From: Macrostomum lignano
Taxonomy: Eukaryota
NCBI GenBank assembly: GCA_002269645.1
Contig: NIVC01002615.1
Span: forward strand, 1-64,000
Length of the DNA: 64,000 bases
Direction: 5' to 3'
A program made the position numbers and the translations under genes. Numbering within the stretch: the stretch's first letter is position 1; each line of letters starts with the position of its first letter. Below the pieces are notes generated by a model. It ran no database searches. It was not told the origin of the DNA and was given only the letters and a program-made list of their open reading frames with translations. Shown piece by piece: positions 19,892-58,595 of this stretch.

Positions 19892-22800
19892 CTATTTCGC
19901 CTCTCCGCGCGCCTGTCGCAGCTGATAAGTGAAGGTTTCTATGGTTACGGTTTTCGGCGTCCCCGGCCGGTCGCCGGCTTCCCACAGGTGCCTGTCGTAC
20001 TGCAGCGGCTCTGGCGACGCTGCCGACCCTCCTTCGAATTGGGCGACGGCGCCGCTACCGCCGACATCATCCTGGTCTCCACCGGCCATCGGCGAGACGG
20101 CAGCTCTTCGCGGCTTTTTGTGACGCTTCCGCCGCGGCGGCGGCGTTGTCGGCACGGGCAGCTGCTGCGACTTTTCCTTCTCGCCGCCTCCGTTGTCGTA
20201 TTCGTAGTGCTCACGACGAGCTGACGGCAGCTGCTTGTCCTGATTGGTTCGAAATTCGGTTTGGGGAGAAATGCGGATTTTATCTGACTAAATAGAGACT
20301 AGATCTAAATCTTTACCTAAGCCATAGGCTAGGACCGGCTTTTGAACCTAGAGACTATTGAGACTAGACACAATGAGACTTGAGACTATGAGACTATGGA
20401 CTGGAGACGATAAGACTGGAGACAAAGAGACTATGAGACTATGACACTTTGTGACTATGAGACTATAAGACTGTAAGAACAAGCCAAGACGAAAATAGGC
20501 TTAAGGCGGAGACCGACTCTTGGCTGCCCAGGGCGCCTAAGTACTCACTTATATATTATGATTGTATAGCGAGCAGATGTACATACGGGCTAGTAAACTT
20601 GCGTACATGCAATCAACTAAACAAACCATCTTACAAGACTATGAGACTGGAGACTATGAGACTGGAGACTATGAGAGACTGGAGACTATGAGACTGGAGA
20701 CTATGAGACTGGAGACTATGAGACTGGAGACTATGAGAGACTGGAGACTATGAGACTGGAGACTATGAGACTGGAGACTATGAGACTGGAGACTATGAGA
20801 GACTGGAGACTATGAGACTGGAGACTATGAGACTGGAGACTATGAGACTGGAGACTATGAGAGACTGGAGACTATGAGACTGGAGACTATGAGACTGGAG
20901 ACTATGAGACTGGAGACTATGAGACTGGAGACTATGAGAGACTGGAGACTATGAGACTGGAGACTATGAGACTGGAGACTATGAGACTGGAGACTATGAG
21001 AGACTGGAGACTATGAGACTGGAGACTATGAGACTGGAGACTATGAGACTGGAGACTATGAGAGACTGGAGACTATGAGACTGGAGACTATGAGACTGGA
21101 GACTATGAGACTGGAGACTATGAGAGACTGGAGACTATGAGACTGGAGACTATGAGACTGGAGACTATGAGACTGGAGACTATGAGACTGGAGACTATGA
21201 GAGACTGGAGACTATGAGACTGGAGACTATGAGACTGGAGACTATGAGACTGGAGACTATGAGAGACTGGAGACTATGAGACTGGAGACTATGAGACTGG
21301 AGACTATGAGACTGGAGACTATGAGACTGGAGACTATGAGACTGGAGACTATGAGACTGGAGACTATGAGACTGGAGACTATGAGACTGGAGACTATGAG
21401 ACTGGAGACTATGAGAGACTGGAGACTATGAGACTGGAGACTATGAGACTGGAGACTATGAGAGACTGGAGACTATGAGACTGGAGACTATGAGAGACTG
21501 GAGACTATGAGACTGGAGACTATGAGACTGGAGACTATGAGACTGGAGACTATGAGACTGGAGACTATGAGACTGGAGACTATGAGACTGGAGACTATGA
21601 GACTGGAGACTATGAGACTGGAGACTATGAGAGACTGGAGACTATGAGACTGGAGACTATGAGACTGGAGACTATGAGACTGGAGACTATGAGACTGGAG
21701 ACTATGAGACTGGAGACTATGAGACTGGAGACTATGAGAGACTGGAGACTATGAGACTGGAGACTATGAGACTGGAGACTATGAGACTGGAGACTATGAG
21801 AGACTGGAGACTATGAGACTGGAGACTATGAGACTGGAGACTATGAGACTGGAGACTATGAGACTGGAGACTATGAGACTGGAGACTATGAGACTGGAGA
21901 CTCTGAGACTTGAGACTATGAGACTATGAGACTTGAGACTATGAGACTATGAGACTGGAGACTATGAGACTGGAGACTATGAGACTGGAGACTATGAGAG
22001 ACTGGAGACTATGAGACTGGAGACTATGAGACTGGAGACTATGAGACTGGAGACTATGAGAGACTGGAGACTATGAGACTGGAGACTATGAGACTGGAGA
22101 CTATGAGACTGGAGACTATGAGAGACTGGAGACTATGAGACTGGAGACTATGAGACTGGAGACTATGAGACTGGAGACTATGAGAGACTGGAGACTATGA
22201 GACTGGAGACTATGAGACTGGAGACTATGAGACTGGAGACTATGAGACTGGAGACTATGAGAGACTGGAGACTATGAGACTGGAGACTATGAGACTGGAG
22301 ACTATGAGACTGGAGACTATGAGACTGGAGACTATGAGACTGGAGACTATGAGACTGGAGACTATGAGACTGGAGACTATGAGACTGGAGACTATGAGAC
22401 TGGAGACTATGAGACTGGAGACTATGAGAGACTGGAGACTATGAGACTGGAGACTATGAGACTGGAGACTATGAGAGACTGGAGACTATGAGACTGGAGA
22501 CTATGAGAGACTGGAGACTATGAGACTGGAGACTATGAGACTGGAGACTATGAGACTGGAGACTATGAGACTGGAGACTATGAGACTGGAGACTATGAGA
22601 GACTGGAGACTATGAGACTGGAGACTATGAGACTGGAGACTATGAGACTGGAGACTATGAGAGACTGGAGACTATGAGACTGGAGACTATGAGACTGGAG
22701 ACTATGAGACTGGAGACTATGAGACTGGAGACTATGAGACTGGAGACTCTGAGACTTGAGACTATGAGACTATGAGACTTGAGACTATGAGACTATGAGA

Positions 22801-58595: not shown

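Follow-up and report, generated by a model that had tools for sequence, protein, structure and literature searches.

SEA-type transmembrane mucins (MUC1, MUC3/12/13/17 and MUC16) and discoidin, or F5/8 type C (FA58C), proteins are the described systems closest to the gene reported here, the former as its functional analogues and the latter (neuropilin b1/b2, lactadherin/MFG-E8, factor V/VIII, the Dictyostelium discoidins and CBM32) as the structural relatives of its repeats. Sea-urchin nectin carries six tandem discoidin domains and DDR1/2 are also discoidin-domain proteins, yet none of these discoidin-domain proteins is, to our knowledge, known to combine discoidin with SEA. Autoproteolysis of SEA domains at GSVVV or GSIVA in the β2-β3 loop is documented (PMC6954182), and PMC6954182 and PMC10556640 describe the domain as a pre-cleaved module that can be separated by force. 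F5/8 type C domains have also been found in invertebrate gel-forming mucins (PMC4948705). Here we describe a gene from the flatworm Macrostomum lignano that lies within positions 1 to 64,000 of contig NIVC01002615.1 (assembly GCA_002269645.1), a 64,000-nucleotide stretch that we refer to as the window. The locus is very probably a functional M. lignano gene for a type I membrane glycoprotein in which discoidin-fold modules are anchored by a SEA domain. The predicted order of its parts, which we consider highly likely, is a signal peptide, a Ser/Leu-rich head of ~100 amino acids (aa), four discoidin-fold modules, the SEA domain, a transmembrane (TM) helix and a 154-aa tail.

The gene was rebuilt independently from the raw sequence and runs on the minus strand (58595..19892), with a coding sequence (CDS) of 3168 nt in 11 exons that specifies 1055 aa and is interrupted only by GT..AG introns of consistent phase (Table 1). 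Its start codon at 58595 is the nearest ATG downstream of an in-frame stop and is identical to the start Met of copy P0005, and 19892 is the end of the stop codon. An initial annotation, made from the DNA letters alone, had placed a locus at 58595-19892, which proves to be exactly the two ends of the rebuilt CDS, and all the peptides it quoted, including FTSGSVAF, are found in the translated product. Its spliced gene holds, with 1055 aa in place of the ~1051 aa that it gave; the gene that it described as invisible in the open reading frame (ORF) track has a GenBank entry as a hypothetical protein, although without domain annotation. All 1055 residues form an exact substring of GenBank PAA56491.1 (BOX15_Mlig030082g1, Macrostomum lignano “hypothetical protein”), to which we were led by a cluster look-up, and a word-indexed protein search with the product returned Macrostomum lignano proteins only. 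The BOX15_Mlig models (Mlig_3_7 annotation) were produced by genome-guided RNA-seq transcript assembly with StringTie, TACO, TBONE and TransDecoder (PMC5730564). Because PAA56491.1 comes from this RNA-seq-guided annotation, all of the exon joins are transcript-derived, including the one from 52827 to 27592, on which the spliced product proposed in the initial annotation depended and which is present in the deposited model.

Residues 126-728 consist of four repeats of ~145 aa, each with six Cys at near-constant spacings of 46-51, 10-11, 37-41, 32-38 and 8 residues. Pairs of repeats are 22-29% identical, with all six Cys in register, and score z = 7.4-15.4 in Smith-Waterman comparisons against shuffles. 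In four out of four, a phase-0 intron falls at Q|(I/V)C and is bracketed by the GC...(I/V)C pair, a shared place that is expected from tandem duplication of a two-exon unit. The fixed six-Cys spacing, the alignment scores and the common intron position bear out the four ~140-150-aa repeats with a mid-domain GC...C pair that had been proposed from the sequence. Every repeat begins with a Cys and ends with GC(F/Y)...C, residues that are candidates for the disulfide by which the N- and C-terminal ends of an F5/8 type C domain are joined; the FA58C consensus has one Cys at its start and another near its end. Some of the modules are separated by T/S-rich linkers of 10-20 aa, which are probably O-glycosylated. 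A six-frame translation of the window revealed no other copy of the repeat or of the SEA domain outside this gene.

Structure prediction gives these repeats a discoidin-type jelly-roll. An AlphaFold2 (AF2) run on repeat 4 plus the SEA domain, aligned with 15 paralogue rows that comprised repeats and contiguous repeat-linker-SEA segments, yielded a model with a mean predicted local distance difference test score (pLDDT) of 75, in which residues 21-140 of the repeat stand at 87-97 and are mainly β. We compared this model with the PDB by Foldseek and considered the top 50 matches, the part of the model responsible for each class of match being judged from aligned lengths and secondary structure. 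The best matches were to discoidin/FA58C and CBM32 structures (E 7.5e-5 to 5e-3; target-normalised TM-score ~0.5-0.6), with neuropilin-2 b1 (E 7.5e-5 to 1.8e-4; target-normalised TM-score 0.49-0.59) and lactadherin C2 (E 2.5e-4) joined by discoidin I/II, CBM32 modules, the C domains of factor Va/VIII, CASPR2 and IFT25. Nearly all top-50 matches to the repeat part are FA58C or carbohydrate-binding module (CBM) types, mostly CBM32, and stand-alone CUB, PKD or ZP structures do not occur among the 50. The mainly β repeat and these matches agree with the eight-stranded, distorted jelly-roll of F5/8 type C domains. These observations support for the repeats a galactose-binding-like fold of the discoidin (F5/8 type C) type that has diverged too far for sequence methods. 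The resemblance to FA58C/discoidin put forward in the initial annotation is therefore retained at the level of the modeled fold only, and not as sequence similarity, for which Pfam and PDB searches gave nothing.

The membrane-proximal region (aa 736-852) is supported as a SEA domain by its modeled fold and by homology to paralogues, while its membership of the family fails by sequence. It aligns over the whole domain with paralogue P0017 (BLASTP E 4e-6), sharing the motifs C-x-C-x2-NY-x-PVF and F-x2-GSV, and the SEA regions of P0017 (E 1.7e-5, 25.3 bits) and of P0022 (E 9.7e-6, 26.1 bits) themselves match PF01390 at scores just short of the gathering cut-off of 26.4; P0022 carries the canonical FKSG|SVVI. 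The modeled order of elements, β1-α1-β2-β3-α2-β4, is that of the ferredoxin-like SEA sandwich, and the structures matched by Foldseek are MUC16 SEA domains (8vm1, E 6e-4; 7sa9, E 1.1e-3; and 1ivz), the match to 7sa9 having a target-normalised TM-score of 0.65 and a root-mean-square deviation of 3.8 Å over 118 columns. In the predicted structure, G806|S807 (G223|S224 in the construct) forms the two-residue β2-β3 turn between strands 212-221 and 224-234. F-x-x-G-S-V is kept in three paralogues that are 22-27% identical to this protein in the region, and G-S-V is the sole run of three consecutive invariant residues. Both the membrane-proximal SEA domain and the placement of FTSG-SVAF at an autoproteolysis-type position, as originally suggested, thus gain support from the paralogues and from the model.

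The remaining features fit a type I topology. A Kyte-Doolittle scan finds a single strongly hydrophobic segment (aa 877-901) besides the signal-like segment at the N terminus, and 10 of the 10 N-x-S/T sequons lie ahead of the TM helix, on the ectodomain side. Immediately after the helix comes KCTNCCS, whose CxxCC is, by analogy, a candidate palmitoylation site, and then the 154-aa tail with its Pro/basic cluster and several Tyr. At the other end of the protein, the N-terminal region (57064-56765, aa 26-125) opens with C-x-C-(T/V)-P, which reads LCQCTP here and FCSCVP in P0017, and a second C-x-C stands ahead of the SEA domain (24546-24520), where the present protein has ICGCSANY and P0017 has ACICPTNY. 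Neither of the two C-x-C motifs nor the ~70-aa Leu/Ser-rich segment behind the first one matched any family.

The PAA56491.1 locus is one of three near-identical genomic copies, and comparison with the second (PAA59476.1 on contig NIVC01002258.1, our locus L001) provides a measure of the selection acting on it. Exons 2-11 are collinear in L001 at 94-99.5% identity, and AG/GT is kept there at each boundary of the exons checked (2-9). Across 847 codons, 48 synonymous and 25 non-synonymous substitutions separate the two copies (dS 0.079, dN 0.013), for a dN/dS of 0.17. On this evidence the window gene is functional and subject to purifying selection. Relative to exon 11 of the window (20239-19892), L001 (24475-24921) has an in-frame insertion of ~35 aa (QRERHRLQRRGLGEGDGDD) just ahead of the Pro/basic cluster, and the length of the cytoplasmic tail is therefore polymorphic between copies.

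Relatives of the repeat were sought with a four-repeat profile (147 positions) in 1.84 billion representative proteins. Eight proteins were found at E < 1e-10, seven of them from M. lignano (four entries for paralogues, and three earlier models of the window gene itself) and the eighth, P0010, bacterial. We rejected the bacterial and metagenomic matches (P0010, P0012, P0013, P0015 and P0016) as relatives because the matching stretches are partial, covering mostly 14-70 of the 147 positions with none better than ~2e-5, and because their scores are sums over 6-13 weak repeats; P0010 itself is a CHU_C/type IX secretion system (T9SS) protein. The true relatives found with the profile come from M. 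lignano only, in line with the lineage-specific origin that had been considered possible, and neither this search nor those of Pfam and PDB sequences found an ortholog in a described family. As far as the databases searched show, the repeat family appears to be specific to Macrostomum. A word-indexed search with a 12-repeat profile came back empty and missed even the M. lignano copies, which we take to reflect a limit of the index and not a true absence; the same kind of search with P0017 returned three M. lignano proteins only, its Thr-rich words having probably filled the candidate list.

The genuine relatives (P0007/8/17/21, P0022/P0011 and P0009/18/19) alternate the six-Cys unit with long Thr-rich linkers, and complete models end with a membrane-proximal domain, a TM segment and a short tail. 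P0007 (UniRef A0A1I8G2V1) matches the repeat profile at E 8e-58, and P0017 has ~200 aa, mostly Thr-rich, between its last repeat and its SEA domain. UniRef titles the older models of the window gene “CUB”, “PKD” or “REJ domain-containing” and the paralogues ZP, DUF3707 or “Membrane-associated”. We set aside the names PKD, CUB, REJ, ZP and DUF3707, which are not reproduced by Pfam and are inconsistent with one another. In the older models P0007, P0008, P0017 and P0022, several units are missing the final strand together with its Cys pair, which may be an error of the models. Asn/Tyr/His-rich stretches in the paralogue models resemble Thr-rich linkers or retained introns read in the wrong frame, and one such stretch falls exactly at Q|(I/L)C, the position of the conserved intron in the window gene. 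These four models probably need re-annotation.

Several results count against the reading of the protein developed above, and they are best considered together with the explanations that compete with it. Pfam searches at E<=10 with the whole protein and with seven pieces of it gave nothing relevant, F5_F8_type_C (PF00754) and SEA included; PDB sequence searches with the whole protein, the SEA region, a SEA profile and a repeat profile were equally empty of relevant matches, and a 12-repeat profile found no match among PDB chains at E<=10. The alignment behind the good model is made of paralogous repeats from one species only, and the first AF2 run, on repeat 3 alone with a four-row alignment, had reached a pLDDT of 70 and only unspecific jelly-roll matches before being superseded by the second. 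The SEA part of the model is at a pLDDT of only 55-75, with Foldseek E-values of ~1e-3. The likeness to discoidin may also reflect convergence rather than homology. One alternative is that the repeats are an independent Cys-rich β-sandwich (CUB-like, PKD/REJ-like or a new fold), in which case binding of glycans or lipids would not be needed. The titles CUB, PKD and REJ on older models of this gene would suit this explanation, as would the lack of sequence similarity to F5_F8_type_C, a six-Cys unit that differs from the FA58C pattern, and a first model whose matches to viral capsids, GOLD and furin P domains were of much the same strength. We nevertheless consider it unlikely: Pfam CUB, PKD and REJ are also nil, the deeper alignment brought the repeat to its high pLDDT and to matches that are almost all FA58C/CBM-type, and the Cys at the start of each unit and the GC(F/Y) near its end are placed as in FA58C. 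A discoidin fold is thus the assignment that we prefer for the repeats.

The SEA domain raises a separate question, which is whether it cleaves. Many SEA domains, including most of those in MUC16, do not, and it is MUC16 SEA domains that are the best structural matches here. The architecture could accordingly be as described, with the SEA domain acting as a non-cleaving spacer (as in most MUC16 SEA domains, agrin and perlecan) in a single-chain, non-sheddable component of an adhesion system or glycocalyx. The motif in this protein is GSVAF instead of the canonical GSVVV, and Pfam SEA (PF01390) misses this copy altogether, even at E<=10 with the region searched by itself. Even so, we find a non-cleaving spacer somewhat doubtful, given that G-S-V is the only invariant triplet among paralogues this divergent, that G|S falls exactly in the predicted β2-β3 turn and that variants such as GSIVA do cleave (PMC6954182). 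Self-cleavage at G806|S807, by analogy with the SEA domains in which it is established, therefore seems to us the somewhat better supported expectation. Decay is a far more remote concern. M. lignano has undergone large recent duplications (PMC5730564), and a duplicate or pseudogene copy on its way to being lost from a recently polyploid genome might look like this one in its 25-kb satellite expansion in intron 4 and in the “partial” flag that GenBank gives the deposited model. However, the frame of 1055 codons is intact, the splice sites are all canonical and the model derives from assembled transcripts, and the low dN/dS relative to the other copy together with the intact frame makes decay so improbable as to be essentially excluded. 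The flag most likely arises because the deposited model opens 36 codons before the ATG and does not extend as far as the in-frame stop further upstream. On the functional side, a full-text literature search with supplements turned up no expression or function data for Mlig030082, Mlig005288 or Mlig018924, and literature searching found no data on ligand, expression site or cleavage for the protein, which likewise tempers our reading.

If a SEA-anchored, discoidin-fold glycoprotein is indeed what the gene encodes, its behavior may be pictured on the model of SEA proteins of the MUC1 type. During folding in the endoplasmic reticulum the SEA domain would undergo self-cleavage between G806 and S807, and the two resulting chains would be held together non-covalently through the SEA β-sheet. 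At the cell surface, the lectin-like α chain (about aa 26-806) would then bind its ligand, a glycan or a component of the matrix, and could be shed under force, whereas the remaining stub with its TM helix and tail (CxxCC and the Pro/basic cluster) might signal. A lectin or adhesive function is suggested tentatively, and we would not yet put it above the alternatives. More speculative still is the idea that a separate class of sheddable membrane mucins or adhesion receptors with a SEA anchor arose within the macrostomid flatworms, with a so far unrecognized, extremely diverged branch of discoidin as the ligand-binder, and that the window gene is an “all-lectin, no mucin” member of this class, released by force and signaling through its tail; we think this rather unlikely as a whole.

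Table 1. Exons and other features of the gene in the window, with the Cys residues of each repeat (protein numbering).
Feature	Position in window	Strand	Content
Exon 1	58580..58595	-	Start codon and first 5 signal-peptide codons; donor GTAAGA; upstream in-frame stop
Exon 2	56764..57123	-	Remaining signal peptide (to aa 25), CQC motif, N-terminal Ser/Leu-rich region aa 26-125; no family match
Exon 3	53870..54039	-	Repeat 1, first half (C127...GC173...VRQ)
Exon 4	52827..53106	-	Repeat 1, second half (IC184...C221...GCF257...C265), and T-rich linker
Intron 4	27593..52826	-	25,234 bp; 23-bp, 18-bp, 24-bp and 11-bp tandem arrays and six ~820-bp elements
Exon 5	27411..27592	-	Repeat 2, first half
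Exon 6	26488..26922	-	Repeat 2, second half, and repeat 3, first half
Exon 7	25447..25923	-	Repeat 3, second half, T-rich linker, and repeat 4, first half
Exon 8	24379..24807	-	Repeat 4, second half, C-x-C-x2-NY-x-PVF motif (CGC...NYRPVF), SEA N-terminal half (β1, α1)
Exon 9	24084..24294	-	SEA C-terminal half (β2, β3, α2, β4)
G806-S807 codons	24223..24228	-	Predicted SEA autoproteolysis site, inside FTSG/SVAF (24214-24237)
Exon 10	22938..23197	-	T-rich stalk, TM helix aa 877-901 (23129-23055), juxtamembrane CxxCC (23051-23037), start of cytoplasmic tail
Exon 11	19892..20239	-	Cytoplasmic tail with Pro/basic cluster (part at 20134-20105) and stop codon
Repeat 1 Cys			127/173/184/221/257/265
Repeat 2 Cys			277/328/338/377/411/419
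Repeat 3 Cys			425/473/483/524/556/564
Repeat 4 Cys			585/632/642/680/718/726

Nearly all of the non-coding stretches in the window are tandem minisatellite. Except for intron 8, which is 84 bp long, every intron is largely made of its own tandem array: a 21-bp unit ×62 in intron 1, 20-bp ×129 in intron 2, 24-bp ×30 in intron 3, 14-bp ×30 in intron 5, ACAG ×130 in intron 6, 12-bp ×43 in intron 7, the 9-bp unit GAGCGGAGG ×88 in intron 9 and 15-bp ×146 in intron 10. Intron lengths are 2- to 4-fold apart between the window gene and the second copy, although the exons are still 94-99.5% identical. In intron 4, the gap between exons 4 and 5 is only 440 bp on NIVC01002258.1 as against 25.2 kb in the window, the extra DNA being a higher-order amplification. 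A non-satellite element of ~820 bp occurs six times within it, at 30044, 31747, 34465, 38700, 42796 and 48132, with 18-bp and 23-bp arrays coming after each copy. The copies at 31747, 34465, 38700 and 42796 are 99.8-100% identical, that at 48132 is 90% identical and that at 30044 is partial (81%); the element was not found at the locus of the second copy. Elsewhere in the window, an ORF fragment at 4303-4626 (+) matches Pfam Solute_trans_a (Ostalpha/TMEM184-like; E 1.8e-11) and is probably an exon of a neighboring gene, and another at 13577-14044 (-) matches TAFH/NHR1 (TAF4 or ETO-MTG type; E 7.7e-10), passes straight into a Cys/Val/Ser-rich tandem repeat and is probably an exon of a further neighbor.

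The new elements here are the architecture, the domains assigned to it and a family of repeats that turned up in M. lignano alone, the gene itself having been known as a deposited hypothetical protein. The analysis supplies a structural annotation for M. lignano proteins that have been labeled “hypothetical” or given inconsistent automatic names, and it defines a repeat family that lies outside Pfam coverage. Because M. lignano is amenable to RNA interference and transgenesis, a role at the epidermal, gut or adhesive surface is testable.

A further comparison is with the M. lignano paralogues A0A1I8HA14/A0A1I8G2V1 (“Membrane-associated protein”), A0A1I8G185 and A0A1I8FZS0 (“ZP domain-containing”), and PAA49141.1, which have the same six-Cys repeat as the window gene, the pre-SEA C-x-C...NY-x-PVF, FxxGSV and the layout of TM helix and tail. 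They differ from it in having ~9 or more repeats with long Thr-rich linkers between them, and their repeats are 13-26% identical to its own. Discoidin proteins resemble the window gene in domain length (~145 aa), in having a Cys close to either end of the domain and in arranging these domains in tandem on adhesion or lectin proteins outside the cell, whereas the window repeat has no Pfam or PDB sequence match, six Cys and a conserved intron flanked by the GC...(I/V)C pair. F5/8 type C domains bind their ligands (glycan, lipid or peptide) by loops at one end of the barrel. Other SEA proteins (enteropeptidase, matriptase/HAT-type, agrin, IMPG1/2, ADGRF1/ADGRF5 and GPR126) likewise have SEA beside the membrane or glycosylated regions, but they carry other partner domains, the proteases being type II and the adhesion G-protein-coupled receptors having seven TM helices. 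Literature searches found no described protein with discoidin-type modules and a SEA-TM anchor in one chain, and we know of none. With the SEA-type mucins the window gene shares a type I topology, a SEA domain close to the membrane in which G|SV occupies the β2-β3 turn, a Thr/Ser-rich stalk, juxtamembrane Cys (MUC1 has CQC just after its TM helix) and a tail of moderate length, and paralogues such as A0A1I8HA14 and A0A1I8G185 also have the long Thr-rich mucin domains of that group. Unlike them, it is without a long proline/threonine/serine-rich (PTS)/tandem-repeat domain, its ectodomain being built from four folded β-sandwich modules; outside the SEA fold a sequence relationship to these mucins was not detected, and cleavage is predicted only. 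In this flatworm family, the “pre-cleaved, force-separable” anchor of SEA domain and TM helix, familiar chiefly from the membrane mucins of vertebrates, is combined with mucin linkers and with modules of predicted discoidin fold.

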